In this document: positions 990 to 49,248 of the stretch, one piece after another
Layout of the letters: each line of letters begins with the position of its first letter
How positions within the stretch are numbered: position 1 is the first letter of the stretch
Assembly: GCA_024704765.1 (NCBI GenBank)
Contig: JAKMXF010000088.1
Location: forward strand, 248,001 to 312,000
DNA from: Oopsacas minuta
Taxonomy: Eukaryota; Animalia; Porifera
Direction of reading: 5' to 3'
Length of the DNA stretch: 64,000 bases
Made by a program: the position numbers and the translations under genes
The notes under the pieces: generated by a model
Seen by the model: the letters and a program-made list of their open reading frames with translations, nothing else
Database searches by the model: none
Told to the model about the DNA's origin: nothing

Positions 990-1103
990 TAGGGTTGCCA
1001 GATTTTCAAGAGTCCAAACCCTGACAAAATTTCGTTTCGACAATCAGTGGTGTATTTTTGGGCAGGAAACTAGGGGGTCAAAACCGGACGTCTGGCAACC
1101 CTA
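990..1103. mobile_element. hAT-type MITE
   Basis: Perfect 13-bp TIR tagggttgccaga/tctggcaacccta; flanking 8-mers ttgcagct (982-989) and ttgaagct (1104-1111) match 7/8, as expected of an 8-bp hAT target duplication. Confidence 0.8.
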
Positions 1104-2123: not shown

Positions 2124-2919
2124 CAAACTTGAATCACATATCGTATAGAGGCTCAATATGTGTATAATTAGACAAAGGAAGATAGATGGGTGGAGTCGAA
2201 CAAGGGGTCACTCGATATGGTTATAAAGAGATTTGAGTATGGAATATTATTACATTCCTGGAAAATGTTTACATTGTTATGGAAAATGTTACTCAAGTGA
2301 CCACTCGACGAAGGGAAATTTATGCTAATTACGAATTTCGGTATAAAAATATGAGTACACTTACTTACTTGGAATTATTTTATTTTAACACCTTGTATAA
2401 TTTTTACCTCTATCGTGTTAAAATTCGAATATCTGTAGAACTCGGATAAGACCTACTCTCAGGAAACCAAAATTAGACGTACTAACCCAGTGTATAGACA
2501 TACAACTGAATAGATATTGTATTACAGTACATCTTATCCGAGTTCTACTGTAATTCCAGATATTTATGCAAATTTTTATCTGAATTTCGTAATCAACATA
2601 AATTTCCCTTCGTTTGAGTGGTCACTTGAGTAACATTTTCCATAGCAACGTAAAATTTCAAGGAATGTAGTAGTGGCGTAGCCAGCCTTGGCAGACTACT
2701 GGCAAACGGGTGGCGCGAATTGTGTTATGTTATGTGACATTACCTGGCGCAACGTAAACAAGAGGCGCAAATACACCACTGGAATGTAGTAACACTCCTT
2801 ACTCAAATCTCATTGTAACCCCAATACCATCTCAAGTGAGCCCTTGTTTGACTCCACTCATCTTCTTGAGTCTAACTAAACACATATCGATATTCTATAC
2901 GTTACGTTACTCAAGTTTG
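2124..2919. mobile_element. Foldback/long-TIR element with a nested MITE in its right arm
   Basis: Arms of about 220 bp (2124-2345 and 2580-2919) are imperfect reverse complements, e.g. ggaaaatgttactcaagtgaccactc vs gagtggtcacttgagtaacattttcc; ends are caaacttga/tcaagtttg. Confidence 0.65.
2671..2781. mobile_element. hAT-type MITE nested in the foldback element
   Basis: TIR tagtggcgta/tacaccactg; perfect 8-bp TSD gaatgtag at 2663-2670 and 2782-2789. Confidence 0.8.
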
Positions 2920-2993
2920 TTGAAATGGAGGCACACCGGTTGAGAACCACTGATCTAGTTAATACCTTCCAGGGCTAGATCGTTGCTGATAAC

Positions 2994-4217
2994 ATGGCTA
3001 GTAGATTTGATAACATACAAACTCCTGACCCATTTGATGAAGTTACTAAAAAGATAGAAGATGCATTTGATAAACTGGTTCAGCTTGTACATAGCAGAAA
3101 GATATCTCTATTAACTAAGCTCAGTGATTATCGGATTGAGTTTGATAATTTAGTAGCGAGTAGAATACAAACTGAGAAAGAGCTTCATTCAATGAAACAA
3201 CAAATTGAAAATGTGACAGCTAATGAATTGAAAAGTATGCAGGACAAGTTTTTGTCTGAAATTGAGGAGAAACTTCATAAACTAACTCTCTCTACTACAT
3301 CTTTTGAATTAGATTTCCAAATCAATTCTCACATTATTGAACAAGGGATTAGCAAGTTAGGTAAAATCATTAAAGTTAGTGAACTGATAGTACCTAATTA
3401 TTCTTTAATGAAGATGCCTGTTGTAGCTGTAGGGAAGAGAGGTAGAAGAAGAGATGAGCTTGATGGACCAAGAAGTATTGCCTATGAAGAAGAATCAGGA
3501 TTAATATTTATATGTGATATGGGTAATGCTCTTGTTAAGATATTCAATTCAGCTGGTGAGTTTGTTAGTGATTTTGGATCTAAGGAGTTATACAAACCAT
3601 GGGGTATTCTTCTTCATGGATCTTATATTTATGTGACTGACGTGAGGAATTGCTCAATTCTTAAATATGAAAGATCTAATTATCAGCTTTTAAAGAGAGT
3701 AGGGAACAAGAGTTCAACTATAAATGAATATAAGTATCCAAGACAACTAGCTAAAGGTCCAGATGGATATCTGTACTATGCACCAGAGGATAGGAACAAT
3801 AGAATATCTGTACTGGATACTGATCTTATTCTCATACGCTATATTCAACATGAAAGAGTTGTTAATCCAGTTGCTGTCAAGTTTACTAAAGACAACATGT
3901 TTGTTTTGAGTAATGAATCAACTGATAGAGTTCATTTGTTCAATATGGATAGAGAATATATTGAATGTATAATCTCACTGGAAGCTGAGAAGATAACATG
4001 GTTCTTTACTATAGATATTATTGGTAACATTCTTATTTCAAACTACACTAATGGTATTATTCTTGTGTACAACAGTTTAGGTGTATTATTACATTCAGTG
4101 GGGAAACAAGGTGATAATAAAGGTGAATTTGATAATCTTACCGGTATATGTACTACAAGAAGTGGAAGGTTGATAATAGCGTCAAGTAACGAGAATTATG
4201 GCCTACAAATTTTCTAG
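2994..4217 (+). CDS. Coiled-coil + NHL-repeat beta-propeller protein (TRIM71-like C-terminus, no RING/B-box seen)
   Basis: 407-aa ATG ORF; helical heptad-rich N-terminus, then NHL repeats (GPRSIAYEE..IFICDMGNALVKIF, KPWGI..IYVTD, YPRQLA, GEFDNLTGIC). Confidence 0.85.
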   Translation: MASRFDNIQTPDPFDEVTKKIEDAFDKLVQLVHSRKISLLTKLSDYRIEFDNLVASRIQTEKELHSMKQQIENVTANELKSMQDKFLSEIEEKLHKLTLSTTSFELDFQINSHIIEQGISKLGKIIKVSELIVPNYSLMKMPVVAVGKRGRRRDELDGPRSIAYEEESGLIFICDMGNALVKIFNSAGEFVSDFGSKELYKPWGILLHGSYIYVTDVRNCSILKYERSNYQLLKRVGNKSSTINEYKYPRQLAKGPDGYLYYAPEDRNNRISVLDTDLILIRYIQHERVVNPVAVKFTKDNMFVLSNESTDRVHLFNMDREYIECIISLEAEKITWFFTIDIIGNILISNYTNGIILVYNSLGVLLHSVGKQGDNKGEFDNLTGICTTRSGRLIIASSNENYGLQIF

Positions 4218-7131: not shown

Positions 7132-9006
7132 TTACACCTGTGAAGATACATTAGCATCTTTCAAGGTTTCTACTTCTGATTCTGGAAGTTGATTCTCAAT
7201 TACCGATTCTGCCTCTTTCATATTGTCTAACTCAGCAATTGTAGGATTATATTCTGGAATATGTTTTTTATGTAACCCTCTGTTAAGATAGAGACAGAAC
7301 AAGATTACTACTATTAACAGGACTAATAATAGGATTAGAACGAAAACTATGACAGCAAACACGACTAAGATAAATTCAGTCTCACCAAAGTTCGAGATTT
7401 GAGGGCTTGTAGTGATGAATTCACAGTCACTATTGTCTGAAGTGGAGATGTTGTATCCGTCAAAACAGGAACAATAAAATGAACCGATTGTGTTTGTACA
7501 ATCCTGTGGACAACCTCCATTGTTTACCCCACACTCATTTACCTCATTACAAATACTATTATTGTATTTAACGAATCCCGCGGCACAATCACAAGTGTAT
7601 GAACCAAGTGTGTTAGTGCAGTAGCCTTCACATACTACACTACTCTCTTCACACTCATTCACGTCATAGCAGAAAGTTTCATTGAGATTAACGAATCCCT
7701 CATCACAGTCACATGTGTATGAACCAAGTGTGTTAGTGCAGTTACCTTGACATGTAATACTACTGTCTTCACACTCATCTATGTCTGAGCATACGAAACT
7801 ACTATTATTGTATAAGGCACGTTCTGGTGGATAAGTACAATTACAACCAGTCTCTGTATCAACTCTATACCAATTATAACCCTGACAGACTATTGAATGG
7901 TCGAAACACTGATAATTAGGGTTAGCACAGTTCACATAGAGGCTGGGATCCTTGACCTGGAGGTCTGGGTTTCCTGGACAAAAATTGTATGAGTCTAGTT
8001 CTATTTCGACATTATATACGTCTTCTAGTATGTAGATCCATTCTGTTTCACAGGTGCAATCGAATGCAATGTATTCAAAAGACAAGTAACTTAATTGTGG
8101 AAATTGTTCAAATATTTCTGGACTCAAAAGTGCTGGATTATAATTGTCGAGGTGGATGTTTTCAATACTTTTGGCTAGTGTAAGGGTTGATAGTGGAAAT
8201 GATGGATTAAGCCTCAGACGAACATCTTCTAATGCATCCAAATCAATGAAAGTGTATTCTCCAACCGTAGTTATGTCATTATTGGAAAGATAAATTTTCT
8301 CCAATTCATGTAAACCATCAAATATACAGTCATATAACTCATGGATTTCATTGTTATCTAAATTCAATCGTCTTAACTTGTATGTCCCATTAAATGAATC
8401 TGACATTAATTTTGTTATGCCTCCGGACTCCCAATACAACACCTCCAATTTATCCAACCCCCCGACTAAAGTCCGATCAATGACACGACTTGACTCTTCT
8501 CTTATAAACGAGCTATGGACTTCAATGTCTATGAGATGTATATTTTGTGAGAAAAATGGCATCAAATTCGATCCTAAAATATCAGCCTCGAAGTACTCCA
8601 AGTTCGGGAAATACGTAAAGAAGTCGTTATGATTAATAAACACTTCATAATCATAAAAAACTATTTGAGTCACGTTATAATTAATCGTGGAAGTTTCAAC
8701 AAAGACGGGTTCATAGAATTGATTTTCTATTTCCAAAGTTTCTATATTACTAGGAATATTTATATTCAACGTAGCACCAGCACCTCCCACCAGTATTTCA
8801 ATATCAAGATAGTAATAACTCCCCTGAGAACATTCATAGATTTTTTCCTGTATTGCTTCTGTATCTTGCCCGCGAACTTCACAGTCTAGCTCATCACCGT
8901 CCTCAAAGCATGTCACTATTGTATTCCCACATTCACCACTGCCAAAAACAACTGAATGTGTGAAAAAGAATAAGAATATGATAAGTTCCTTTCTTGTTGC
9001 TTTCAT
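7132..9006 (-). CDS. Type I membrane receptor: signal peptide, LRRs, LRRCT, 3 calcium-binding EGF repeats, TM, short tail without TIR
   Basis: 624 aa; LRR motifs LRRLNLDNNEI, LEKIYLSNNDI; LRRCT IAFDCTCETEW; cbEGF DIDEC/DVNEC/EVNEC..CTNTxGS; TM FILVVFAVIVFVLILLLVLLIVVILFCLYL. Confidence 0.88.
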   Translation of the reverse strand: MKATRKELIIFLFFFTHSVVFGSGECGNTIVTCFEDGDELDCEVRGQDTEAIQEKIYECSQGSYYYLDIEILVGGAGATLNINIPSNIETLEIENQFYEPVFVETSTINYNVTQIVFYDYEVFINHNDFFTYFPNLEYFEADILGSNLMPFFSQNIHLIDIEVHSSFIREESSRVIDRTLVGGLDKLEVLYWESGGITKLMSDSFNGTYKLRRLNLDNNEIHELYDCIFDGLHELEKIYLSNNDITTVGEYTFIDLDALEDVRLRLNPSFPLSTLTLAKSIENIHLDNYNPALLSPEIFEQFPQLSYLSFEYIAFDCTCETEWIYILEDVYNVEIELDSYNFCPGNPDLQVKDPSLYVNCANPNYQCFDHSIVCQGYNWYRVDTETGCNCTYPPERALYNNSSFVCSDIDECEDSSITCQGNCTNTLGSYTCDCDEGFVNLNETFCYDVNECEESSVVCEGYCTNTLGSYTCDCAAGFVKYNNSICNEVNECGVNNGGCPQDCTNTIGSFYCSCFDGYNISTSDNSDCEFITTSPQISNFGETEFILVVFAVIVFVLILLLVLLIVVILFCLYLNRGLHKKHIPEYNPTIAELDNMKEAESVIENQLPESEVETLKDANVSSQV

Positions 9007-19137: not shown

Positions 19138-19165
19138 ATGGCGCAGAAGAGTACTCCTACACAAG
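19138..19165 (+). CDS. Probable first coding exon (MAQKSTPTQ/G) of the giant ankyrin-TRP gene
   Basis: ATG + 9 codons + G, then GTTTGT (the same donor is used at 15066). Phase 1 matches the acceptor ctaatctacAG at 21277 and gives G/GA in frame with the long ORF. Confidence 0.5.
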
Positions 19166-19287
19166 GTTTGTTAATTATGATTATCATTTTCTACAATATC
19201 TTCGCAATTTAGTATACATGCAATCTCTATTAGCGGGCAATTTTGGTCCAGCTTCATTCATTTCCATAGAAACGAACCTCTGTAAGC

Positions 19288-19346
19288 GGGGAATGGGGAA
19301 TGGGGAATGGGGAATGGGGAATGGGGAATGGGGAATGGGGAATGGG
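19288..19346 (+). repeat. (GGGGAAT)8 tandem repeat
   Basis: Eight perfect 7-bp units plus GGG. Confidence 0.95.
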
Positions 19347-21277
19347 TGATACTTTAGAGAAAATTATGCCTCAAACTATTAAATTTTACCTCTATAAGTG
19401 GGGAATTCTACGATAAAATTTTGAATATTCAATTTTTGAACAATTTGGAGAATTCCATGTGTTTATCGCTATGATGAATTGATATCTTTGAGCTCTCAAG
19501 AAAATTTCTTACAATTTTGTATATTCAACCAACAACCTTAGGGCATATTATAATAATCGATTATCTGTGAAAAGAGAGTCGTTGGAGCAAGTGGCTGATA
19601 GATATTTTGATTCAAATATCTCTCATTCAAGGACAAATACTTTTGAAATTATCATTAGGGAATGGGGAGGTTATTAAGAGATTCGCCGGCCCGATGTCCC
19701 CCACTTATAGAGGTTCTACTATACTACTAAGGGTGGAAACTGCATATGTGCCTATTGAAACAAGGGGGTAGAAAATGGGGCAACGGATCCTGGCGCTCCC
19801 AACATCTTTCAGATATCTTTGAAGTTTTGTGTATTAATATAGTGTTTTGTATGTTTGTATGGTAGCTATAAATATACAAACGATCATAAAATCAGCTGAC
19901 CCAGAGCTCGTCTAGTATAATTTTAGCATTTATTAATATTGCATAATAAACAGTCGTCAATCTGACATACACTGATCCAGACCGACCTAATTTGCGGTAT
20001 GTTATATAAAAGAAATCATATGTCCCATCAGGCTCCGCATAAATATCATCTTCCTACCCTCCCCCTGTAGATAATCGAATTTTGCAGGAAATTCCTTGCA
20101 ACGTGTATTTGCAATAATTAGTAGTAAGCCCCTGGCGTTTTGCTTGTGATTAGAATAAGCACGAATTAGGAAATTCTATATATTTGTTTGCTATTCAGGA
20201 TATTCATCCCATAGAATAATAAATCAACAATTATAATCTTTTAAGATAGTATCAGTCGAATGTAATCATATACAGGGTTACAAGCTATAGAAGTATAACG
20301 ATATATCGATTAATACATATGCACACTATCATTAAGCAAAATTTACTGTTCCTAATTCCTATGATATTACTAAACAGGAGCGTAGGAAGCCCATAAATGA
20401 TGGAACTTCCCTTGTTGGCATAGCAATGAAGGGTTAACACACACATATGTTGTCTAATTATATAGTGCTGTAGCCAAATCAGGAGGGCTTACGGTCCTGT
20501 CACCCCCTCGGGTTTGGAGCCAATTCAATCAATTCAAGTTGATAATGATTCGGGTGAGAGGTTACAATCCGCTTACAAAGAACCATAGACTCTATGCAAA
20601 GAACAAAATGATATATTATAATGTATTCGAAGTACGTACGTACATCTAAGTAGTTTAATACGTCTTTCAATGAAGACGTAATTTATAATACTTTCAATCT
20701 GCAATTTTTGGTGACGTAACATCGATTAGGCTGATTTCTGCAATAAATATTTTGGTTCAAAACAGTACTCGAATTGTTAATGAGAAATCTCAGCATAGTT
20801 GACCAAATAATATAAACACTTACTTGATAATAATGTGACTTATACAAATCTATCAAAGTCAAAATCTGATATTTCGATGTTAACCTAGACGTATAATACG
20901 TTATAATAGATCTCGTATAAAGTATAATAACTTATACGCGAATTATATAACTTAAGTCTATATATACCAAACATAGTGGTTTTGAGACAATGATATGGTT
21001 GCATAATGGCCAGACACAGTGCCCTAAATGAGAAGTGTTGAGTTAACAATAATTATGTAAGTGTAAATGCATTGTCTTACAAAAGTACAAAATATGTAAA
21101 TTTAGAATAAGGAATTACTCAGCTGAGTGGCTCGAATAATCACTTCCTCAGAGAGTGTTGTTGTTAAAATAGTTTAGCGCAAAATGTTTCGGAGCTCAGG
21201 CGACCCTCAGGCCCTATGACTACCCCACTGACTGTAATAAGGAATAATACACACTGACTAATCTCCCTAATCTACAG

Positions 21278-24200
21278 GAGGACTACGTGAACAGATATTG
21301 AAAGAAGGAAAACTTTGCATATCAAAGAATGATAAACTATACATTGGAATACCGAGTACCACTTTCAATAAACCTGAACATGTAGTTGAATATAACAATA
21401 TTAAAGGAAGAATTCTCGAATCATTCGTTTCTTTTACCAAACCACTTAAAATGCCAGATGAAGGGATTTTTGTTGACATACTAAAACCATTTTCGAATCC
21501 TTCAGCAATGAATACTTCTGTTGATTACTTCGATTGCATCAAAGACTTCATTAGCATAGAGATACTCTTCATGTTTGTTCTAAAGCATAAATTTTGGGAA
21601 GATTATTCTGAATTTATGAATTTGTGTTATCAAAACCGCCACAAAATACAATGGGGCACTGAAGATAAAGAGGGCAATACTATGCTACATTATGTAAGTA
21701 TTATGAGTCAATATCCTGAACATGCATGTGATATTATTCAATACATCAAGAGTATTACTGGATATAATTACCTGATCAATAAAACCAACAAAGATGGAAT
21801 TATACCTCTAGCATCATCATTGCATGACAAATTTATTTGCGATAATGCAAAGAAAGTTCATCATGTAGGAATTATCAATGAGTTGGTTCAAGCTGGAGCA
21901 AATCTTCTATTGAAGACACAGAATTCAAACGATTATGTTTGGAAAGGAGGGGATGACAGTATATTCTGTGTTTTGAATGTAGATCCTTCAATATTAGTAG
22001 CGACAAAATCTTTTGCAACTAATGAAGGCAAAAAATCCAGGATATGTTGTAACCTCAAAGAACCACCTGAGTGTGGAATACATTGTGTAACAACACTCAA
22101 TACCATTGATCTCTTTCCAAATTACCTAGGACAAGTCATAAACTTTCCTTGTACTCAAATTGCAAAAACACTATTTACTAAAAGACATTGCAAATTTGAT
22201 ACCAAAATGCCAGATGGTACAATGGTGCTTCATCATATTATACAGTTCGGGAGTGAAGAATTGGTAAATTATATGTTTGAGCAAAAACTTAATTTGTTGC
22301 CCTTGGTCAAAAATACCAATACTATCTTACACCTCGCTATTCTCACCAAGAACGAGAAAAGAGCAATCCTTATACTTAAACTATTATCAAACCCAATCCT
22401 CATTCAGATGTTAGACTATCAAAACAAATACAATCAAACCCCTCTGGATTTGATTTTGGTAGCAAACTTGCCTAATCTGATAGATGTACTTAATACACGT
22501 ATTCCTTCTTTCATTAGTAGAACTGATGGAAACCGTAATTTTTTGTTACACAGAGCTGTCATAGGGAAGTGTACAGATGTGTTAAAGTATTTAGCAGAAC
22601 AGAAAGAGATTGGAGATATTGTGAATGAAAAGAATTCAAATGGAGATACAGCCATAATGCTTTGTATACAAAACAAATTTGTTGATGGATTTCCTATTAT
22701 TCTAAATATAACACAATGCATTGCGGATGAAACCGACTATAGAGGTTATACTCTTCTACATTTAGCCATTATTCATTTCGAGGAGACAATATTCTCACTA
22801 CTATTACAAGATCTTGTAAATACTAACCGGTCTGATGTCATCAATAGAGTAATTAGACCAACACAATCAACTTCTGATAAGTTCGCAGCATTACTATTAA
22901 CTCCACTTTTAATTTGCATGTATCACGAGCATTTCTCAGCAGCTAGACTACTCATACAGCAAGGAGCTACAATTGATACGCCAGATTGTGAAGGTAATTC
23001 ATTCAATCAATACCTCATTAAACATTGTCGCAATCCAGCCGAATTGGAAGAATTCTTCAAAGTTAAACTCAGAAAGTGTAATTTTAAATACAAATCTCCA
23101 TCTAATATTCCCGATATACAAGATGACATTAGTTTACTATCTTTGTCTATTCAATGTAATAATGAAGGAGCATTCGTCTTATTACTATCAAATTGTAGCA
23201 TAACGATGATTGCATATCAAGATCGGTCTCCGAACAATGTTTTGCATATACTTCTTTCTGATAAGAAATACAGCCATTTTCTGAACCCACTGCTAGACAG
23301 GTTAGCTCAACTGAAGACCGATAAAATACGAAGTTCAGAAGTATATCAAGTGGTCAATAAAAGTAATTGTGAAAATCGAACACCATTGATTCTTTCGATC
23401 CATTTACAAGATTCTGTAATTGTCAATAAACTTTTGGAACTAGGTTGTGACGCACACAAAAATATTGAGACATTACATTTCGCAGCCAAATATGGTGACA
23501 TAAAAATGATAACATATATTCTGGATAGAATTCAAAACTCCGAAATACTGAATACAATGTTCTCACATCACAACCAAGAAGATGAAACCCCCCTACATAT
23601 CGCTATTCATAGAGAAGATTTAAGTATGGTAGAAATTTTATATCATTACGTAGATTTGACAAAACAAGATAAGAAAGGTATTACTCTTTTAAATTATGCG
23701 ATAGAACATGGAGAGAAAATATTTCAAGTTATATTTGAGAAGTTTAAAACTTGTAATGTAAAACTTCTCAATGTTTCTATAGCAAATGAACTGCCAGAAC
23801 ATTGTGTTATCCATTCTATTTCTTACAGAAACTTGCTAGCACTCAAAACTCTCATCAATTACAGTAAAGATGCGATAAATATTTCTTCTGTACATCTACC
23901 AATACTACATTATGCTATTTGTAAGCAGTTTGATGAAGGAGTCAAATTCTTACTTTCACTGGGTCTACCCTTGGCAATCAAGAAAACAGAACGAAATTTT
24001 ACTCTTCACAAAGATCGTCTTCAGAAACAAAACATAAGTTTAGAGTTCACTGAATCTAAAGTATGCTATAGATTGTCGAATGGCTATGTAATGACAGATA
24101 TTCCTGGCTTTACAAAAACTGAGTATTGTGGGATGATCAATTTACCTAATGTAGTTAACAAGAATGCTCTTTTAGAAAATCTTGTTTTATGTGGATCAAT

Positions 24201-27200
24201 AGAACCAATTGAAAGCTATCTTTGTACTAATACACCTCCACTATCCGTAAATGACAAAGCTCAATTATCTCTTATTTCGTCACAATTTGCAACACAAGAG
24301 ATCATGTTATATCTACTCGATGAGAATTGTCCTAGTTTTAGTTTTGATTGGAGCGCAAAGAATTCTTCAGGAAACACTGTAGTGCATGTTGGCGTATTTA
24401 ACACATGTATTGGCACATTTCTATCTATGTTAGAAGGTCTACGCGTATATCAATCTAAACAATGGAGTTACTTATCAAGTGATATACGTAATATTCGAAA
24501 TATGAAGGATAAGACTGCATTGGAGTTAGCTATCTTTGCAAACAATTCAGAAGCATTCGATGCTCTGATTAAACATGGAGCTTCTTTAGTTACAAAGGAT
24601 GGATACCAGAATAACATTCTACACAACTTTTGTACCTGTAAAAATGCAGAGATCTCCTATTTCGACAGAATACTAGTTGAAATAACTAAGCTTAAGAAGG
24701 ATCTCATTAATGAATATAACAACATTGGTTACACACCTTTACATACAGCTGTGAGCACTTGTAATATACAAGCATATAGAAAGTCTATAGCATTACCGTC
24801 GTGTAGATACGATGCAGTCACTAAATATGAGAGTAATAATATCGTACATCTTGCTATCATAAATGGGAGTCCTGGATTGTTGAAACAAATAATTGAAGAT
24901 CTCAAAAATCGTGAAAATATGAAAGATGTAGAAAACAAATTGATAAACAAAACTAACAAGAAATCACTTTCCCCTCAGTTCCTTGCAGTGGAATGTGGGA
25001 ATATTGACCTTATTCTTGAAATGCCTGAATTCTCAGGGGTAGACGCAGCCGGAGCTAGTCTCCTCCATTCTGCTGTTAAATACTCAAACAAATCAAACGA
25101 ACATTTAAAGATGATCAATGTGATACTTTCTAAACGAAAGGAAATGTTGAATACAAAAGATAACTCAAATGAAACACCACTTCATTATGCAGTTAAACTG
25201 AAAATGGAAAAAGCCTTGCATTTATTGCTTGCATGCAATTCCATTGATCTTAGTTGTCAAAATGATGCAGACATGACAGCACTACACCTTGCTATTCAAA
25301 GTACCACAAATATTCTTAGAGCAATCCTCACTAAAATCGATACACCTCAATCAGCTCATTTAATCAATACTCAAGATTATACCCTCAAAACAGCACTCCA
25401 TCATTGTATTGAACAAACTAAGAATAGTGAAGATGAGTTGAGTCTGTTATTATCAAAAAATCCAGATTTATCTGTAGTTGATAAATACTCAAATAATGTA
25501 CTTCATTATGCTGCAATGAAGAAGTCAAGAATCAAATATCTTCAAACATTATTACGTCACATTAATGAAAATCGTCCTGATCTCCTTCAAGTGTTGTTAT
25601 CAAAGCTGAACCAACAAATCAATACACCTCTATACTGTGCTATTCAGAACAGCAATGTTAATGGTGTTGATGAACTTCTAAAAGTTAACGCCTCCCTCCC
25701 TGTAGTGGACAAAGAGGGAACAATTACACTTTGTAACAGAAAACCATTTCCTCATATTGATGTGCCGATACGTATTTATGAAGTGAGAATCACAAATAAA
25801 CCAGAACTCTGTATATGTGTAGGTTTTAAGTTATCAGTGCAACAATGGATTCTATCAGATTTACCAAATCTGAGTATCACGTATCTCACACACAAAAATC
25901 CCTCATATTCATCTCATGAAGTTGTAGAAATTCAAACGATTACTGAGACTGTCTTAACATCTTATCTACTTCCTTGTCAGTGTTGTGAACCTTTAGAAAT
26001 CTTTATAAATGAAGTAAAGAATCAAATTTTTAACAAAAATGCTAAATTAATGCATTTAGCTGCAGCACATGGTTCAATACAGATTGTAAAGTTTCTAATG
26101 GAGTATTTTGGAGCAAACATTCCATTCCTTGATGAAGATCAGGCTGGATATTCTATAATACATTATTCTATTGAGAATAAAGACTCGGAGATATTACGAT
26201 TACTATGTGATAGAATGAAGAATAACTTTCCAGAAGAATTCACTAAATTGTCAAGCAAATTGCTACATTTTTGTATCACTAAGGGTTCACGTATTGAATC
26301 ATTTACCATTCTGCTCGAAGAACAGTATGAAGCTAACCTTAGTTACACTGATGAGCATGACGATACTCTCCTTCACTTGATTGTTTTACACCAACAACAA
26401 GATTCTTACACAAAAGAGCTACTGAATTGTTCTTGGCTGTCTACTCGTTACTGTAATTTGCTAAATAAGAACAGAAATACTGCACTACATTTAGCAATTA
26501 AGAAGAATCAGCTGAATAATATCACAGAGATACTCAAATGTAACCCAGATATTTCCATTCAGGATTCAGATGGGAATATGCCTCTACATTTAGCAGTGCA
26601 ATACTCAACCAATGTGATTATAAGAAAAATAATTGTATTTATAGATGTATTACCTAACAAACTGCAACTCTTTAACGCACCAAATGTCACAGATTCTAAA
26701 AGCATGCCTATACATCTGGCTACATCACAAGGATTATGGGAAGTTGTGGAATTGTTACTTAAGCACGGAGCTGAGTTATATTCGATTGATTCTTCAGGGA
26801 AAACTATATTACATTTAGCTGTACAACTAGATGGTCCAAATCGTTTGGACATGATTACAAAAATCCTCAATTACGAGCAAAATACAGGTAATGATACTCA
26901 ATTCATTTTTGTAAGGGACAAAGAAGGAAGAACTCCATTACATCTTGCCATTGAAAATGGAATTATTGATTTCGTCAGAGAACTTCTGAAACATCCAATT
27001 GATCTCCAAATAGTTGATGATAAAGGAGAAACAGTGCTACATTATGCTATTCGGAAGTGCACGAACGAGCTATTTGATATAATTTTCGATTCAATCTTGC
27101 CGCTCGCTACACAACCTTGTCAAGAAAGAAATAATCATCCTCTCTGTAGCCAAAATATACACGGTCTAACTCCATTACACTTAAGCATCGAACTACAGTA

Positions 27201-30200
27201 TGAATATGCTATAGGAAAACTTATCTCTCAATCTACCTGTGTAGATATACGAGACAACAATGGGATGACTATATTACATTATGCTGCGTATTTTCAAAAA
27301 GAGCAATCAATAGTTATTGAACAAATAATAGAATTCACAAAGAATATTTCTATCACTTGCCTTACAGACAATACTACAACTGAATATATTCTAAATTCTA
27401 CAGATAAATTCGGAAGAACACCACTATTACTCGCAATCGAATCCACAAACTTATTTGCTGTAAATTCAATCTTGGCATGCGGTCCTGATATCTTTATGAA
27501 GGATCATAAAGGAAATGGAGTTATCAGTTACGCTGCTTTGAATCCGGATTCATTAGAAATATTAGAAATTATTTTATCAAGATTCAAGCGGGACATTTCT
27601 AATGAGAAATATGTTACATTGATAAATGAATTAAATAGCAGTGGCCTATCAGCTTTACATGTGTCTATTTATTCGAAAAACCTGCAAGGAGCTAAATTGT
27701 TAGTAGAAAATGGTGCAAAACTAGTTCTAACTCAAACCAGCAGTTTAATTCAAACTATAGGCAAAGAAAGTATGTCTGCAAATAATGTCTCTTTGGAGAT
27801 AGGAACTTTGAGCAGACCAGAGAAAGAGGTGAATATTATTTGTTATCAATTTCTATCTGGTGAAATTATATATTCGACTCTCCCAAGTCTTGTTGACGTT
27901 GGTTTTGCTGAGGAGATAGATTTTGAAAGCAAATTATGCGAAACTCAATTAATCCAAGAAATCTTACAGTCTAATTGTACAGAAATTATTGAAGCTATCC
28001 ATGAAAAAGATCCTAATTATATCAATGAGGAATTTAATAACATTCCCTTCCTCCATCTAGCTGCACAGTATGCTACTCTACCAATCATGCAATATATTTG
28101 TCAAAAAAAAGACAGTTTTAAATTTGAAAGAGTGGATAGTTCAGAACGTCAAGAAACAGCTATACATTATTCAGTTGATAACACATGCCCAGATGTGGTG
28201 GATTGCTTACTGAATGAGGTAGAACAATATGAGAAGAAGAATAGTTTGGCAGTAAAGATTATTGATACCGGTGATAGTTCTGATTGCAGTCCCCTACAGA
28301 AATCAACCAAGGAAAAACAATGGAAAAATTTTATGATATTAATTGAGCACGGTGCAGACTTCACGAAAAAGGATAGCAACGGTACGATCCTACACGCAAT
28401 GATATCCAAGGATGATTCCCAGTCATCTGAACCGCTTGACTGTCTCATAAAGGCAATAAACAAATCCAATCTTACTTCAGAAAAGAAGCAATCTTTTTTC
28501 AACATAACACATTCTGGCTTGACAGCAGTTCATCTAGCCGTATCTTTATGTAATACTACTGCTGTAAAACAACTAATCAATGCAGAGGTAGACCTTTCTA
28601 ATTCTAACAACAGTAATAATGGCTTTACAATAGTTCATACTTGTGTGGATAACCCTCATACTCAAGCAAACTTATATTTATTGAGTGTTCTATGCAAAGC
28701 AGTAGCTAAGCAAGATCTACCGATGTTAAGAATGTATAAAATAATGCATAAGAAGGATCAGAGAGGAAACACGTCACTACACCACACTCTTAAGATGGAA
28801 AAGAGTGTAGAAGGGCTAGAAATCTTGTTGAATAACGGTGCACCTTTTAATGTTGGTGATACTCACGGGAATACTCCTTTACATTTAGGAGCTAAACATA
28901 ACTTACTATTACATGTGAAATCTATTCTTTTTTCTATACAAAACGATGCACGAGAGAGAGGATATGGACCAAGCAGTAGAAAAGAACGTTGTATAGCGGA
29001 GATCATGAAGAAAAATAATAAAAAACAATTGCCCATGCTTCTGACGAAAGACAAAGATATTCTACTCTGTATGCTGAAATACTGGGATAATGATACTTTG
29101 TTGGATCTTGACTTGTATCGGAGAGGGAATTTAATCCATTTCGCTGTATATAATCAAGAAATTGAGTTAATTGAAGCAATCCTAGCTTCGCAATCATCAA
29201 CTAAAAGATATGATATGCTAAGAAGTAGAGATTCTGATAATTATTCACCATTGCATATAGCTGCTGAGAAAAATAACTCTGTAATTGGGAAACTGCTAAT
29301 TGATCATGGCGTTGATGTTAACATCCGAAGCGTACGAGGCACTCCTATTGAAGTAGCTATAAAATGTGAAGCAGTTGAATTCGCTACGAAATTAATAAAC
29401 GAAGGGGCAGACATTAAACGGTATGTATTCCTGCTAGCCAATGATCTGATTAGTGAAAAGAATATTTCACGTATCCTTGACGATAGACATCTCAGCATAG
29501 ATGACAGATACTCAACTGCTTATTGCTCTGTTATACACTATGCAGCTAGACAGAGTAATACAAAGAGAATTGCATTCTTGTTGAGAAAGAATGCTGATCT
29601 GCTTTCAAAAGACCGTGATGGGAGGGGAGCAATTCACCATGTAATCTCTTGTCGTAGAGACCCAAAAATATTACGTGCTATTCTGGATGAAGCTTATCGA
29701 CTTGATCTAAATGACCCAAATTCTCCAAATTTGGATTCTCTCCTTGATTGTGACTATTCAGCGCTAACTCCTGGTATGCATGCTGCACAATTGGATTATC
29801 TTGAGTTCTTTGAAGTAATCTGCACTGGAAAGTATAAATTTCACCTAGAAACATTCCATTACACAGATCCACAAGGAGACAACTTACTGCACCATCTGAT
29901 TAAATGTAACTCCATGCGATGTATTAGATTCCTCCTACCCTACCTAGCCAGCAACTTACCAGAAGGATTTTCACATATCGTGAATGGAAGGAATGTATTA
30001 GGACTGTCACCAATGGGTCTAGCCAGGAAGAAAGATCAGTATGAAACAGTAAATCTTTTGATAAAACTATGTGATGCTGAATTCTTTGAAGCATGCCCTG
30101 ATGTCGTGCATAAGATTGCTAACGAAGAAGACAATAAAACTCTGAGTAGTATCTTAGATAAAATGGTAATATGTGATGTCGAAAAGGCATGCTTATCCAC

Positions 30201-31782
30201 CAAAATAATGGATGCTAATGACGAAGGTGGCTACCCCAATTTCGCAATATTCAACTATAATCTGGCACCATTATGGCACAAGATGTACAATTCACAGAAT
30301 AATCGAATAAAATATCATCCTTTGCTTAAATTTACAGTTGATGCTAAAATCAAGCTTTATCAGTGGTGGTATTTACTAATGCTATTTCTGTATCTGTTAT
30401 TCTACATCCCAATGGTCACTGCTCTGCTTATTGCATCTACACACACTGACGATATGCTTTTCTACTATTACTCCCATTTAGATCATCTACGATTGATGCT
30501 GGAGATATATATTATATTAATAACTATGCTCTATATGGCAAACGAAGCAATTGAAGTGTTTGGTAAATGGAAATACCTGCAGAACCTGCCTAGCTCCTCG
30601 CGTAACTTAATATACAAACCTCCAGATCAGATCAGGTATTATGGGTTAGGAAATTTAGAAGGAATGGTATTCCATTCTGTGTTGAAAGTTTTCATTGAAA
30701 TTCCACATATTATCAGATATAAAATACACGTTTTTGACCGTAAAAACACTGATTATTTCCTTCGTGCAGTTTGTACACATATATCCACTTCCTACAGTAT
30801 TCTTGAGTTAGCTAGTGTAATTCTATTATTGTCCATGTTTTATTGTCGGCTCTTACTCTTCTTTACAACTTCGCCTTCCATCAGTGCTTTACACTGGACA
30901 ATATCTGCATTGACTTTCATTGCATTCACATTCAAATTTTTCAAGTTTACCAAGATATTCCCAACCCTCGGGATTTATATTGAAACTATTTTCCAAGTTC
31001 TCAAGAAAGACGTACCTAGATTTATGATTATAATTCTATTGGTTCTGGTTGGCTATGCTGGTGGTGCACACTTGGTAGCAAGGAAGTTTGGAAGTACCAG
31101 TGAGGATTGTGGCAGTCTTAATGAATGTTCGCCATCAAGTTGGCTCAGTGATGATTTTGATTCAGTTTACTCATTGATAACTCCGCTATTGTCTGGTCTT
31201 TTGTTTCTTGTTGGAGGTGGACCTGCAAATTTTGAATTAGAGCTATACCAGATTGATATAATATTCTCGATATTCTATCTGACATTCGCTTTAGGGATAA
31301 TAGTCGTTTTGTTGAACATTTTTATTGCTCAACTCTCGCAAACATACTCTGACATCCACAGCGAGAAACACATACTAGATTATAAGGCTGATTTAGCTTT
31401 GCATTACGAGAAACAATCAAATTTAGCTTTCATCTTTGAATGGTTTTTCAGTAAAGCTCTTAGACGTATAATGGTAGAAACAGTAACCATCCCAATTAGT
31501 GAATGGAAATCTTATCTTAAATTTTATTCTTACCGTATTGACTCTGATGATGAAATCCTGTTCCAAGATTTGGCAAAATCAACTTACAAAACCGAAACAA
31601 AAGAATCAAGCAATGAAAATAATAAAATAATTGACCTGAAAGAATCAATGGACGCACAATTCACAAAACTTCAGCAAATGATTACTCAGATTCAATTTGC
31701 ACAGCAACCAGGAGAACAAAAGGATACTACTCATACTGCTGCTTCAAGTATTAAATCCAATTCCTTGAATAATCAGAGTTAA
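21278..31782 (+). CDS. Giant ankyrin-repeat TRP-type cation channel (TRPA/TRPV/TRPN-like), about 3,500 aa
   Basis: Single open frame of 10.5 kb; roughly 60 ankyrin-like motifs (GxTPLHxA variants); C-terminal six-TM region with pre-S1 HPLLKFTVDAK, S4-S5 LGIYIETIFQVLKKDVPRF, S6 VLLNIFIAQLSQTY and TRP-like helix. The annotated TTG start at 21298 is better explained by the acceptor at 21277. Confidence 0.88.
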
Positions 31783-38301: not shown

Positions 38302-40071
38302 ATGTCACAAACGAATGATACTAAATTTCTCTCAGAATTATCGCCTGAACATCTATTGATACTACAACAGCTGAATACTCACAGACTCGAATCAATGGAC
38401 ATAACGACCGGACAGATCTGTACACCGAAACCTCCTGGTGCCCCAAAGAAGGGCTATAAGCGCTTGAGCATGAGGAGAAGCAAACCAGTCTCACAGGTAT
38501 TCGGACGTAATCTCACTAAGATCTCTACTTCATATGTGAAGACTTCTATCCTAGACAACCACATTGCCTTCAAGGAATGGCTACAGAGTGAACAAGATGA
38601 ACCCTCACTTACTGACACTGATTCGATCCCTGCGTTTGTACGTAACACACCATTACGTAGGTCATGCCCAGGACGTGCTCGCGGTACATTACAACGCCGT
38701 CCACACACTAACTCATCTCTGTCCATAGCTGATTTAGAATTTGGCGAGGAAGCACAACGCACAGGCGCACCGTTGCCTTGTTTCGCTCTTGAAGCGGTTA
38801 GACACATCGTTGCATGCGGTCTACGAGCGGAAGGGGTGTTCAGGAAATCTGGGAGTCATGTGCGGATGCGACAACTACGCGAACAGTGGGAGAGTGGAAT
38901 TATGTCTGATCTACAGGCTCGAGATCAACTGCCGGGACATTACCGCTTCTCAATAGAGTTACATCGTACTCATGATATAGCCGGATTATTGAAAGAGTTC
39001 TTACGAGAACTCCCAGAGCCTTTATTAACTCGAGAACTGTTACCTACGTTTCTATCTTTATCAGATTCTACTACGCCTATTTTACCCGCTTTACGAGGAC
39101 TTGTGTGTTTACTTCCGGAGAGGAATAGGTGTCTGTTACAGCTGTTACTCTTCCTATGTAGTGAAGTGTTGGAAAATAGTCAGTTTAATAAAATGGATAC
39201 TCATTCGTTAGCAACCGTATTAGCGCCAGGAATGTTACCTAACCTAACTAATCAAAAGGATTTTACGCTCGCTAGTGTTTCAGTAGTGAGACAACTCATT
39301 GAGGCGTCGAATGACTTATTTTCAGTTTCAGAATCAGATTGGTCGATTTTGAATCTTAAATCTATTCTATTATCGAACACTAATGAAAACTCTCCTTTGT
39401 CAGCCAGCTGTCAATACCCGTCGCCATCTCCTCTGTTAGCTAGTGAGAGTTATGAGTTTGGAGGTAGAGTTAAGCGTTTCTTTAAGCGAGCTCTTCTCAG
39501 CCCTTTCGATTCTCCGAATTCTGTTCCTAAACTAAAGCTTGGTAGAATTCCTAACACAGATATGTCTACAGGGCTATATAGGTCTAATAATATAGGAGTA
39601 ATACATTGTTCTGATAATTCAATAAGCTCCAGTCCAGATTCATTCAGAGAAAGGTCTAGAACGTATGGAGAGCTGAAGTTAAGGGTGTCAGACAGAGAAA
39701 GGATATCACCGGGCCTGATTCATCCACGGCTCTTAACTGGACCCCCTCTTATCTTCAGCCCATCTGAGAATATAATGCGAATTAATTCCACTTCGAAACG
39801 ACAGTTTATTATTCGACCGATTAACTCAAGTCCTCTTAATGATATAGGCCCTAATCCTAAAATATTAACTACTAATATTCATCCTGAGATCAACCGCGAT
39901 ATTCCAAAGCCTTTCTCAAAATACACCACTCACGTAACTTACAACAAACTGCCACTTAAACCACTTCACACCTCGCAGATTGAAAATACGCGTTATATTT
40001 CAAGTCCTGCCAGTCAGTCAAATGATCATTTGTTTGATATTAAGAAGATAACAGTTTTAACAGATAACTGA
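38302..40071 (+). CDS. Rho GTPase-activating protein
   Basis: 589 aa; arginine finger EGVFRKSG, HDIAGLLKEFLRELPEPLLT, NKMDTHSLATVLAP; Ser/Pro-rich C-terminus. Confidence 0.9.
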   Translation: MSQTNDTKFLSELSPEHLLILQQLNTHRLESMDITTGQICTPKPPGAPKKGYKRLSMRRSKPVSQVFGRNLTKISTSYVKTSILDNHIAFKEWLQSEQDEPSLTDTDSIPAFVRNTPLRRSCPGRARGTLQRRPHTNSSLSIADLEFGEEAQRTGAPLPCFALEAVRHIVACGLRAEGVFRKSGSHVRMRQLREQWESGIMSDLQARDQLPGHYRFSIELHRTHDIAGLLKEFLRELPEPLLTRELLPTFLSLSDSTTPILPALRGLVCLLPERNRCLLQLLLFLCSEVLENSQFNKMDTHSLATVLAPGMLPNLTNQKDFTLASVSVVRQLIEASNDLFSVSESDWSILNLKSILLSNTNENSPLSASCQYPSPSPLLASESYEFGGRVKRFFKRALLSPFDSPNSVPKLKLGRIPNTDMSTGLYRSNNIGVIHCSDNSISSSPDSFRERSRTYGELKLRVSDRERISPGLIHPRLLTGPPLIFSPSENIMRINSTSKRQFIIRPINSSPLNDIGPNPKILTTNIHPEINRDIPKPFSKYTTHVTYNKLPLKPLHTSQIENTRYISSPASQSNDHLFDIKKITVLTDN

Positions 40072-44738: not shown

Positions 44739-45845
44739 ATGGCAGTTGAATTTCCTCCAAAATTGGAAGCGAATTTAGATTTGACAACTGATCAGAATTC
44801 TCTTACATTCCAAGAAGCTAGAGATTCCATCAAAGCACAATTTGTTATTTATCGTAACTTATTGGATAAAAAGGAGTTGGACCTATTATCCGAAATTGAT
44901 CAGCTGGAGGAGAATAACAAACCAGAATTAATTCATGTTAAACATGATCTGACCAGACTCCATGGGGTAATTGGTACTTTAGGTGAATCATTAGGAACTG
45001 ACACTTTGAAATTATTCCTGGAAGAGCAAAAAACAGTTTGGCAAAAGCAAATTTTAGATTTTCAGAGATCAGAAAAACTTTTATCCCGCGTGATCTTGAA
45101 GAATTCTGACTTTGAGAATTTTGTACAGAATGTGAATCAAATTGTTCCTTTTTGGTCAAAAGCTAAATTTAGAATAGAATTGGAACCTATTTTGGAAGTA
45201 AAACCAAAGATTGGAGAAGATTGGTATATCGTATCTAAAAAGTGGTTTTCAGATTTCACAGATTCGATAAATCTAACCGCTCCAAAACCTAATGACAGCT
45301 GGGAGTTCCCAGAGAGAATTCCAATTGACCATTCTAGAATCTATGCAAATGGACTATTGTGTGATGTTAACGATTGTAAGGTGTTACATTCCAAAGCTTG
45401 GAAGTTGTTGCTAGAGTTTAATGGTCTCTCGCTTAATACTATCCCAATAAAAAGACGGTCCTATCCACATTCAATTACTCATATTCGGGTCCCAATAAGC
45501 CCGACCATACACAAATGTACCTTAGGACATAATAGTAAAAACAGCAAATTTAGTATTGAATGTGAGATAAGAACATTTCCATACGAAACATATAATAATA
45601 TTCTAAAGAAATTGTCACCATTCTGTTCATTATTTACAACTCATATACCTATACTGTATTCTATTGGAGGGACATATAATATATCATGTAATCCACCTCA
45701 GTATACTCAGTACAATATTAGCAAGCCTTCTAATCAAGTTCTTGTTCAACCTGCACCTGAATCACCAGTTGGCATAATACCTCAAACACTCTTATTGATT
45801 ATCCCTGACGCTATGGGGGTAAACTATTTTCAAGTTCCCTTATAA
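44739..45845 (+). CDS. Coiled-coil + DUSP-domain protein without a USP catalytic domain
   Basis: 368 aa; helical N-terminus, then DUSP signature GEDWYIVSKKWF..PIDHS..AWKLLLEFNG..PIKR; no Cys-box/His-box. Confidence 0.75.
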   Translation: MAVEFPPKLEANLDLTTDQNSLTFQEARDSIKAQFVIYRNLLDKKELDLLSEIDQLEENNKPELIHVKHDLTRLHGVIGTLGESLGTDTLKLFLEEQKTVWQKQILDFQRSEKLLSRVILKNSDFENFVQNVNQIVPFWSKAKFRIELEPILEVKPKIGEDWYIVSKKWFSDFTDSINLTAPKPNDSWEFPERIPIDHSRIYANGLLCDVNDCKVLHSKAWKLLLEFNGLSLNTIPIKRRSYPHSITHIRVPISPTIHKCTLGHNSKNSKFSIECEIRTFPYETYNNILKKLSPFCSLFTTHIPILYSIGGTYNISCNPPQYTQYNISKPSNQVLVQPAPESPVGIIPQTLLLIIPDAMGVNYFQVPL

Positions 45846-46575: not shown

Positions 46576-47706
46576 ATGATTGATAATATTAATAATATAA
46601 TAATATACTTGAGTGCTATTATTTTGTGTATTTTCTTGCTATTCAGTATTTACTGGCTACTGGTGTTCACAAGAAGAATATATTGCTTCAAAAAGTATAA
46701 GAGAGGAGCAACTAGATGTGCGTCAGAGGAATCAGGTTATTTGAATAATCAATGGCTCTATCATTATGAGACTGAAATTATGAAATATAAGCTTCTGGGG
46801 ATAATAAGTGTACTCGAGATGTGTTCAGGTACTCTATATATGGTCACGCTTTTAATCCCAATCGTGGCTATGCATAATGAAAAGTATCATGATCATATTC
46901 GAATTATCCTCCCGTTCAGTGAGTGCATTAATTCTAATATATCTGTAGCTCAGAATGATACAAGTAGAACTGCATATTCAATAGTATATAAATTCATTCA
47001 CGGGGTTGCAATATCAACTCAGTTGTTTATTATGGTAACGTGTATATGTTTGATGAATTATCTCATTGTTCGTATTAAGAGGATCAATAATACTTCAAAT
47101 CCTCGTCAATTCATAATATTTTCTACTTTGTTAAGTTCATTCTTCATCTGTACAAACGTTATTCCAGAATTACACATTATATATCTGTTGAATTGCAGTT
47201 TCTTTCCAATTATTTACATTTATATATTTGTTAAAACTTCTAATAAATTCACACGTGCCTTGCTTCAGAGAGCTCTGGAGAGTCTCACTCAATACGGATG
47301 TAATAAGGAAGAAATGAAAGAATACAAATACTTCAAATACACCATTAATTTTGTGTGTTGTGGATATCTATTTCTTCTAATTGGAGAGGATGTTACGCAT
47401 ATTTCATCAATTACTATGGGTGTACTTATCTACCACGATTGTTATTTCCCATTTAACATGTTATCACAATTCAAATGGGTAGAACTTTCTCAAAAAAACA
47501 TAGAATTCTCTTTCCAAGTTTCCCGATACATAATATTTTCAGGTAGATTAGTTTGTCATATTGGACTGATAATTGGCTTAACTCCACTTGTATTTGTTAC
47601 AATTACAATTTGGATTAATTCAATTCTGAAGTGCTTTAGAAGTAACCGAAAGATAAAGTATACTACAGCACACTCTACTATTGTAGCACCTTTGTTAATT
47701 CCATGA
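46576..47706 (+). CDS. Orphan multi-pass (about 7 TM) membrane protein, paralog of 32466-33605
   Basis: 376-aa ATG ORF with seven hydrophobic segments and the shared motifs listed for the paralog. Confidence 0.8.
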   Translation: MIDNINNIIIYLSAIILCIFLLFSIYWLLVFTRRIYCFKKYKRGATRCASEESGYLNNQWLYHYETEIMKYKLLGIISVLEMCSGTLYMVTLLIPIVAMHNEKYHDHIRIILPFSECINSNISVAQNDTSRTAYSIVYKFIHGVAISTQLFIMVTCICLMNYLIVRIKRINNTSNPRQFIIFSTLLSSFFICTNVIPELHIIYLLNCSFFPIIYIYIFVKTSNKFTRALLQRALESLTQYGCNKEEMKEYKYFKYTINFVCCGYLFLLIGEDVTHISSITMGVLIYHDCYFPFNMLSQFKWVELSQKNIEFSFQVSRYIIFSGRLVCHIGLIIGLTPLVFVTITIWINSILKCFRSNRKIKYTTAHSTIVAPLLIP

Positions 47707-48039: not shown

Positions 48040-48204
48040 CTTATACCAATCAATGTTTATTATCATTTTTGTAAGCGCTTGCTTAACCTGAAACTGGCTG
48101 TGGGCTTTTACTATAAATAGAAAAAATCAATTTTCAGTTTCAATTTCAAATTGACATTCTAGTAACTTTCACTTTCAGTTTCGGTAGCCAGATTGGGGTT
48201 AATT

Positions 48205-49248
48205 ATGCAAGATAGTAATATTGAAGCTGAACTTGTCTTTACACCAAATCTGTATGTTGGCATTAGACAGATGAAAGAGAATCTCTTCAATGAGTTAACC
48301 CGTGATGTGACAGATCTGAGAGAGAGAGCATTAATACTAGAAGTTATTTGTCAGTTTTGTGAAGATATCCGTTGTGAATTGGATAAATGTAGTCAAGAGT
48401 TATTTTCTATTCTAGATCTAGATAATATATATTGGAGGAGAAGACCTAAATACATGAACAAAAGTTTAACTGCATTTGATCAGTTCTTTCATCAACAAAT
48501 ATACACAATATTACCGAAAAATCCAGGAAATCATTGTCTTAACATTTGTATAGTTAATACCTTGGATGGGAATCACCCTTACTTCTACTTAAGACACCCT
48601 TTGCCTGATCTTAAAGTACAACATGAACGAATTGAGCGACTGAAAAAGGACAGATTTATTGTGGGAGAATATTGTTATCTTTTGAATAGAGATTGGTATT
48701 CTAAATGGTTGAATCATGTTAAAACATATAACAGCAATGTATTACAAGATAATTTGAAGGAAATTGGTCCGATTAGCAACGAAATTTCTAATTCAGTTTC
48801 TATACAAGATATTGTATACTGTCAAACGAATTTGTTTATTCAATTATCTGAACCAGTTTGGATATTGTTACTGTCTTGGTATGGATTATCTAACAGATCG
48901 ATTGTTTTCAGAAGACAGATATTATCATGTGAGGATGGTCAGGTAGAACTTGAGAATACATTAATTCACTTACCCTGTTATTCTGATCCAGACACGGATA
49001 GATATGAAGTATTGGGATTTAGATATGAAGAGACAATAGAAAGTGTTTTAAGTAAGATTAGAGTTGTTTTTAGAATTCCAATACAATCACAGTTATTGCT
49101 ATACACACGTCCCAATGAATGGACGGAATGGGTACATATCAGTGGAGAAATTATCTCAGCAAAAGATCTATTCGATAGAGTACAGTTGCTGATTATTAAG
49201 AAAACTGTTAATGATTGGTCTCTTTCCATATCTCCATGCTATCTTTGA
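48205..49248 (+). CDS. DUSP + ubiquitin-like (USP4/11/15-type DU module) protein without a catalytic domain
   Basis: First ATG at 48205; DUSP GEYCYLLNRDWY..GPISN..VWILLLSWYG; UBL-like EETIESVLSKIRVVFRIP..LLLY..QLLIIKK..DWS, then stop. Confidence 0.78.
   Translation: MQDSNIEAELVFTPNLYVGIRQMKENLFNELTRDVTDLRERALILEVICQFCEDIRCELDKCSQELFSILDLDNIYWRRRPKYMNKSLTAFDQFFHQQIYTILPKNPGNHCLNICIVNTLDGNHPYFYLRHPLPDLKVQHERIERLKKDRFIVGEYCYLLNRDWYSKWLNHVKTYNSNVLQDNLKEIGPISNEISNSVSIQDIVYCQTNLFIQLSEPVWILLLSWYGLSNRSIVFRRQILSCEDGQVELENTLIHLPCYSDPDTDRYEVLGFRYEETIESVLSKIRVVFRIPIQSQLLLYTRPNEWTEWVHISGEIISAKDLFDRVQLLIIKKTVNDWSLSISPCYL

Follow-up and report, generated by a model that had tools for sequence, protein, structure and literature searches.

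The window analysed here is a 64,000-nucleotide stretch of the genome of Oopsacas minuta, a hexactinellid glass sponge, and the gene described from it encodes a TRP-type channel whose pore domain is preceded by an arm of about 2,950 residues, made up mostly of ankyrin repeats (Table 1). The frame of its giant second exon runs for 3494 codons without a stop (21298-31782, + strand), and in DNA of 33-36% G+C an open frame of this length excludes a chance origin. All amino acid (aa) positions given below are counted from 21298 in this frame. The corresponding NCBI protein, P0001 (3510 aa), carries the sole name "Ankyrin repeat protein [Oopsacas minuta]" and is identical to the exon 2 translation at 3493 of 3494 residues; the single mismatch is the TTG start codon, given as leucine in P0001 and as methionine by the translation tool. 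P0001 is longer by 16 residues, ten of which come from exon 1 and the others from exon 2. Across the donor junction the sequence is atggcgcagaagagtactcctacacaag followed by gtttgt, with which the intron begins (GT donor). A sequence-only reading of the window had placed the start of the feature at 21278, which is exactly the first base of exon 2 past the AG acceptor. It had also placed the repeats and the pore domain in a single 10.5-kb exon, and this holds. In our own searches, alignments, folds and selection tests, exon 2 alone served as the window sequence, while the spliced P0001 was included in the orthologue alignment, the repeat scans and, for its transmembrane (TM) part, the tree.

The last ~490 residues form a TRP-type six-helix pore domain. 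Pfam assigns Ion_trans to aa 3162-3357, with an E-value (E) of 5e-6 in the whole protein, just above the curated cut-off, and of 5e-7 in the C-terminal piece. The AlphaFold model contains helices S1-S6, the S4-S5 linker, the pore helix and the TRP helix; a beta hairpin precedes S1, and the TRP helix is followed by a beta strand. A hydropathy scan recovers five of the six membrane helices together with the pore helix. Every family-invariant TM residue is retained, and the linker before S1 carries the family-invariant P, H, K, H and P residues. Within the TRP helix, DYKADL aligns in HMMER with the IWKLQK box of TRPV2, tyrosine replacing tryptophan. When the last 545 residues are searched against the PDB, only TRP channels are found among the matches listed (the best 60 of 99), including crTRP1 (2e-12), TRPV2 (8e-7) and TRPV1 (2e-6). 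The Pfam match, the TRP-only PDB matches listed and the modelled S1-S6, pore helix and TRP helix bear out the proposal that this is a TRP-type channel, and a six-helix pore-loop domain with a TRP helix directly past S6 places the protein in the TRP superfamily (group 1, cytoplasmic ankyrin type). That the gene is real and that it encodes a channel can be stated with very high confidence.

The arm ahead of the pore domain consists of four long ankyrin blocks (17, 14, 15 and 18-19 repeats) and 3-4 weak distal repeats, with three homologous ~100-aa inserts between the blocks. Inserts 1 and 3 align over their full length (BLASTP, E 1e-4), inserts 1 and 2 are paired by hhalign with a probability of 92% (E 6e-7), and the other two pairs score weaker by the same method. 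Units of ~600 residues that start with the inserts align in register, with E 5e-48 for unit 1 against 2, 5e-32 for 1 against 3 and 2e-27 for 2 against 3. Hence the claim of an ankyrin array twice as long as that of NOMPC stands as to the number of repeats and falls as to a single array, the repeats being split into four blocks by three non-ankyrin inserts. Near the tip, the cysteines C250, C251, C259 and C285 (the last at 22150-22152) are invariant in the orthologue alignment and follow the pattern CC-x7-C ... FPC (22045-22161). Their surroundings form a low-confidence beta-rich region in the AlphaFold model, and Pfam gives no match in the distal N-terminal region. The four-cysteine piece could be a small metal-binding or docking module.

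Table 1. Coordinates of the giant channel gene and its parts in the window, with the basis of each assignment (pLDDT, predicted local distance difference test; HMM, hidden Markov model).
Feature	Position	Strand	Details and basis
Exon 1, NCBI model	19138-19165 (28 nt)	+	ATG, nine codons and one base (MAQKSTPTQ + G); matched by the opening 10 residues of P0001
Intron, GT...AG, about 2.1 kb	19166-21277	+	Donor at 19166, acceptor AG ending at 21277
Giant exon 2	21278-31782	+	Stop-free from 21298; stop codon 31780-31782
Distal N-terminal region, aa 1-270	21298-22107	+	~86 disordered residues, 3-4 weak ankyrin-like helix pairs, low-confidence beta-rich piece aa 204-263 (AlphaFold)
Ankyrin block 0, aa 274-887, 17 helix pairs	22117-23958	+	AlphaFold DSSP; 14 of 17 coincide with HMM hits
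Insert module 1, aa 888-954, non-ankyrin, beta hairpin	23959-24159	+	pLDDT <50, strands 921-934
Ankyrin block 1, aa 955-1465, about 14 repeats	24160-25692	+	7 model helix pairs and 7 HMM/inspected repeats, aa 1231-1449
Insert module 2, aa 1468-1585	25699-26052	+	No ankyrin HMM hits; homologous to insert 1
Ankyrin block 2, aa 1586-2140, about 15 repeats, most canonical	26053-27717	+	HMM hits 1589-2124 in 5-6 of 6 orthologues; Pfam Ank, 4 stretches in slice 1801-2100
Insert module 3, aa 2141-2245	27718-28032	+	BLASTP to insert 1; insert HMM match
Ankyrin block 3, aa 2246-2955, 18-19 helix pairs, membrane-proximal	28033-30162	+	AlphaFold DSSP
Linker before S1, beta hairpin and short helices	30163-30318	+	C-terminal model numbering: strands 728-730 and 734-738, helices 740-776
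TM domain S1-S6 with S4-S5 linker, aa 3008-3356	30319-31365	+	AlphaFold helices, hydropathy peaks, Pfam Ion_trans, PDB hits
Pore helix and putative selectivity filter VGGGPAN, aa 3305-3311 (31210-31230)	31177-31257	+	Family alignment columns 385-400
TRP helix, aa 3359-3373	31372-31416	+	Model helix 1130-1144 following S6
C-terminal tail: beta strand, helix, poorly conserved end	31417-31779	+	Model E1166-1170, H1171-1189

The number of ankyrin repeats depends on the method of counting. In the whole translation, Pfam detects Ank_2 with E 7e-149 in 22 stretches. When the protein is cut into ten 300-residue slices, all slices from 301 to 3000 give significant ankyrin matches (PF00023 in 16 stretches, Ank_2 in 31), and slice 1-300 gives no ankyrin match in Pfam. 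An HMM self-trained on the protein's own repeats finds 41 at E<1, projection of the HMM hits over six aligned orthologues yields 46 repeat positions, and a manual merge of the two sets comes to about 51. The AlphaFold model of aa 1-1200 (mean pLDDT 67) contains 3-4 weak helix pairs (aa 75-198), 17 pairs (274-887) and 7 pairs (955-1200), and that of aa 2230-3429 (mean pLDDT 74) contains 18-19 pairs up to about aa 2955. These pairs, which were counted by eye from DSSP strings, mostly coincide with HMM hits, and with 22 HMM/inspected repeats of the unmodelled middle they add up to about 62-68 units. The repeat number is 50-68, about 50 having sequence support, so the figure of roughly 60 that had been proposed by eye is a fair one. 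As a counter, hhalign with many alternative alignments was dropped; it gave ~30 repeats and skipped the neighbours of strong hits.

A HMMER search of 1.84 billion representative sequences returned 510 proteins at E<=1e-3 and 64 at E<=1e-30. Among the relatives found, arms of >1,600 residues are confined to the top clade. In the weak hit P0161 (1857 aa, E 4e-9), about 1,400 residues precede the domain, with one repeat hit only, and in no other relative does the stretch ahead of the TM domain exceed about 680 residues. In a tree of the family (LG+G4, quick search, support by the Shimodaira-Hasegawa-like approximate likelihood ratio test, SH-aLRT, only), the giants form one clade with 100% SH-aLRT, which comprises two subclades: clade I with the window orthologues, and clade II, which includes the O. 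minuta protein P0012. The giant clade is nested among small channels that include other O. minuta loci, proteins of the sponge genus Sycon lie outside it, and chytrid proteins and crTRP1 are found at the root. About 40 TM-domain matches are present in the O. minuta genome, only two of them giants. An HMM of insert 1 detects three copies in the window protein and two to four copies, at a spacing of about 600 aa, in most clade II giants; it has no match in any small relative. An ankyrin arm of >1,600 residues, ~100-residue inserts at ~600-residue spacing and a TM domain of the sponge clade together assign the window protein to this glass-sponge giant ankyrin-TRP family, and the giant arm has a single origin inside a sponge-specific channel expansion. 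Within the literature searched, no description of the giant channel was found in papers combining hexactinellids, TRP and ankyrin.

Inside the open reading frame (ORF), neither Tandem Repeats Finder nor a repeat finder detected tandem or long direct repeats at the DNA level. The ankyrin repeats are therefore old and diverged, and their number is not inflated by the assembly, a danger raised in the sequence-only reading that is also contradicted by collinear orthologues of like length. A word search recovered two groups of proteins, the orthologues with 3412-3525 aa and another set with 2585-3939 aa, all of which share ankyrin repeats and the C-terminal domain of the window protein. Five orthologues are collinear with it at 48-58% identity over >3,300 columns, and each is one uninterrupted ORF on a long contig (four ENA assemblies: ERZ25071281, ERZ25072730, ERZ25766962 and ERZ20067936). 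An opening of the LKEGKLC type, as in exon 2, starts several of these ORFs. Identity is 37-56% in the distal arm (47-56% in the distal N-terminal region), rises to 60-76% in the proximal arm, reaches up to 82% in the pore domain and falls to 45% in the last 94 residues. The ratio of nonsynonymous to synonymous substitution rates (dN/dS) was estimated by the Nei-Gojobori method for the unsaturated pair P0004/P0006 (dS 0.5-0.7). The ratio is low in the TM domain (0.12) and the proximal block (0.13) and higher, at 0.23-0.39, across the distal blocks, with 0.23 in the distal N-terminal region, so that block 3 is the best conserved part of the arm by identity and dN/dS alike. Purifying selection acts along the whole gene, which is genuine and selectively maintained.

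The unbroken frame without DNA-level repeats, the same length and order in five single-ORF genes on long contigs and a coding-type conservation that spans the whole length leave the idea of an artefact, whether from inflated assembly repeats or from the false joining of an ankyrin gene to a channel gene, close to refuted. What speaks for a false join is the arrangement in the paralogous clade II, where a separate giant ankyrin gene sits directly upstream of the channel gene; in ERZ25072730, about 670 bp separate the end of a 3935-aa ankyrin-only gene from the 3939-aa clade II channel gene that follows. Fusion or fission events thus occur in the family. No such upstream giant ankyrin neighbour is present in the window. 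Within ERZ25071281 the clade I gene is found in two copies, P0002 (3433 aa) and P0003 (3525 aa), with a dS of 0.05-0.2; these may be haplotypes, recent duplicates or genes of two close species.

Several known channels share parts of this architecture. Like the window protein, NOMPC/TRPN (Drosophila, PDB 5vkq) has a very long N-terminal ankyrin arm before a six-helix TRP pore, and a Foldseek search with the model of the last 1200 residues ranks it first (E 6e-19 over 1367 aligned columns), followed by the 17-repeat Drosophila TRPA1 (2e-18). The linker before S1 is a beta hairpin in the window channel, whereas that of NOMPC is helical. Together with the strand past the TRP helix, this hairpin resembles the coupling sheet of TRPV and TRPA1. 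In TRPN, about 28-29 contiguous repeats form one spring, in contrast to the about 60 repeats in insert-split blocks found here. The motif at the end of S6, VLLNIFIAQLSQTYSDIH, shares 9 of 18 residues, by our own count, with the TRPN motif of PMC4494053. The ~28 repeats of TRPN are described by Schuler et al. as the highest number among TRP proteins and treated as fixed by a one-turn gating spring, and TRPN is reported as missing from Porifera (PMC4494053).

Subfamily placement was addressed with a TM-only profile built from 18 family members, since ankyrin proteins dominated the matches when the last repeats were part of the profile. Its best 60 of 105 PDB matches are all TRP channels, among them crTRP1 (6e-16), TRPV2 (1e-9), TRPV1 (5e-9) and TRPV4 (3e-7), with TRPM4 (1e-5), TRP-gamma (1e-5) and TRPC5 (4e-4) lower down; the NOMPC and TRPA1 pore domains are absent from these best 60. 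Membership in TRPN was rejected because NOMPC is missing from this set while TRPV, TRPM4 and TRPC are present, and because the protein has about 50-68 repeats, not 28-29. The ESM Atlas returns only generic TRP, Ion_trans and YVC1_C clusters and no subfamily. TRPV1, TRPV2 and TRPV4 are the best solved-structure matches after crTRP1 and align from S3 through the TRP helix, but they have 6 ankyrin repeats, a TRP-box tryptophan in place of the tyrosine, and low identity. The Chlamydomonas channel crTRP1 (PDB 6pw4) is the best PDB match among those listed and, with chytrid TRP-like proteins, the closest non-sponge relative among the matches whose names were looked up; however, only S3-S6 align, its end branch in the tree is 2.0, and the sponge-trained repeat HMM finds no ankyrin repeats in it. 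Nearest among named matches outside the giants and small paralogues are channels of Sycon coactum and Sycon ciliatum, which belong to the same TM family and are labelled "TRP A", "TRPA1" or "TRPV4", names that come from depositors or automatic pipelines. Unlike the window protein, these channels measure 950-1270 aa, have 150-510 residues ahead of the TM domain and lack insert modules. TRPA channels have 14-17 repeats, far fewer than the window protein. As judged by sequence, TM similarity points to the crTRP1/TRPV side, possibly to TRPVL, and away from TRPN. TRPVL, which has been reported in choanoflagellates, filastereans and an ichthyosporean, is a live candidate subfamily as well.

The putative selectivity filter sets clade I apart from its relatives. 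It is VGGGPAN or a close variant in all six clade I orthologues, compared with DGGPGN in the small paralogues and the giant clade II, where an aspartate occupies the position of the valine, and this change may alter calcium selectivity. Such a difference, in a genome with about 40 related TM-domain matches, could potentially be explained if the protein were a non-conducting or modulatory subunit that works only in heteromers with small paralogues or clade II giants and supplies the arm to a pore made up mainly by those other subunits. This is very unlikely, as all clade I orthologues share the altered filter and keep the acidic residues that directly follow it (FELEL), no family-invariant residue of S4-S6 has been lost, and the TM dN/dS is 0.05-0.12.

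The protein is best explained as a cation channel subunit of the TRP superfamily that presumably assembles into tetramers, as other TRPs do, and has a jointed tether or scaffold arm coupled to the gate; a probability of roughly 55% is given to this reading as a whole. The N-terminal cytoplasmic arm comprises a conserved tip with the four-cysteine piece, a 17-repeat block and three super-repeats of ~600 residues, each consisting of a ~100-residue non-ankyrin insert and 14-19 repeats. Its last and most conserved repeats lead via the beta-hairpin linker into S1-S6 and the TRP helix. As a long jointed tether or scaffold, the arm could anchor the channel to the cytoskeleton or to partner proteins in the syncytial tissue, and the conserved proximal repeats might couple displacement or partner binding to the gate, a NOMPC-like way of working in a channel that is not TRPN. 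This reading draws on the analogy to NOMPC, on the gradient of conservation along the arm and on its conserved tip, by which a role as mechanosensory tether or scaffold appears plausible. The narrower proposal, a tether that couples to the gate, is drawn from the same analogy and is tentative, being rather unlikely when taken by itself.

Several observations weigh against a jointed arm that gates a cation channel. The TM domain is not TRPN-like, and the filter aspartate of the relatives has been lost in clade I. Confidence in the fold is low for the inserts and the distal tip (AlphaFold, pLDDT <50, six-row alignment), and constraint on insert 1 is weak (dN/dS about 0.8 over 64 codons), so force may not travel along the whole arm. 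Poorly constrained, low-confidence inserts that cut the arm into blocks of 14-19 repeats would also suit an ankyrin-type adaptor platform instead of a force-bearing tether. Such a platform would recruit or cluster membrane or signalling proteins, or fix the channel at sites of the syncytium, and the channel would be gated by chemicals, temperature, voltage or lipids, as are TRPV and crTRP1, the closest matches of the TM profile. In size, the blocks come near the membrane-binding domain of ankyrins, a binding platform of 24 repeats. The arm finds its best PDB matches in ankyrin-1 and ankyrin-2, and the membrane-binding domains of ankyrin-R/B/G, which provide the best matches in both sequence and fold, are likewise long solenoids of canonical repeats. 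They differ in that the ankyrins are soluble adaptors without a pore, with a single 24-repeat solenoid and no ~100-residue inserts. Purifying selection that is strongest on the gate-adjacent repeats, and a conserved distal tip, fit a mechanical path, and both are compatible with a scaffold too. The adaptor platform is considered a real possibility, if not a likely one.

The sequence-only reading had regarded such a channel as notable if the organism lacked neurons, and this is the case, since the source is a glass sponge. The genome paper on O. minuta points out that action potentials are conducted in glass sponges, reports no Nav and no obvious Kv genes, deals with TRPs in one sentence only and has "Ankyrin repeat protein" entries among the weak ion-channel hits of its supplementary table (PMC10280926). 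In a neuron-less animal that fires action potentials without Nav or obvious Kv genes, the giant channel is a concrete candidate sensor for feeding arrests. A bolder scenario, speculative and unlikely, is that glass sponges, with calcium action potentials in their syncytium, independently evolved a NOMPC-like tethered mechanoreceptor. Its jointed arm of >60 repeats would have the inserts as hinges and the cysteine-bearing tip as anchor, and it would be the transducer that starts feeding-current arrest. A conserved channel with about twice the repeats of TRPN, in jointed blocks, breaks the stated maximum of ~28 repeats, and the giant arm constitutes a natural experiment on the role of long ankyrin arms. 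The public label "Ankyrin repeat protein" conceals this channel family.

Other ORFs are distributed over the remainder of the window. Two ORFs with leucine-rich repeats and calcium-binding epidermal growth factor domains (7132-9006 and 58182-60497, both - strand) have the same architecture and orientation and are 50 kb apart. Three ORFs in tandem on the + strand (44739-45845, 46576-47706 and 48193-49248; 351-376 aa) look like a local tandem family; DUSP is found at the same position in two of them, and the middle one (46576-47706) has no Pfam match. A 1936-aa ORF (51700-57510, +) encodes Roc, COR-A and a C-terminal caspase domain. The ORFs with a RhoGAP domain (38302-40071, +) and NHL repeats (2994-4217, +) are apparently ordinary neighbours.

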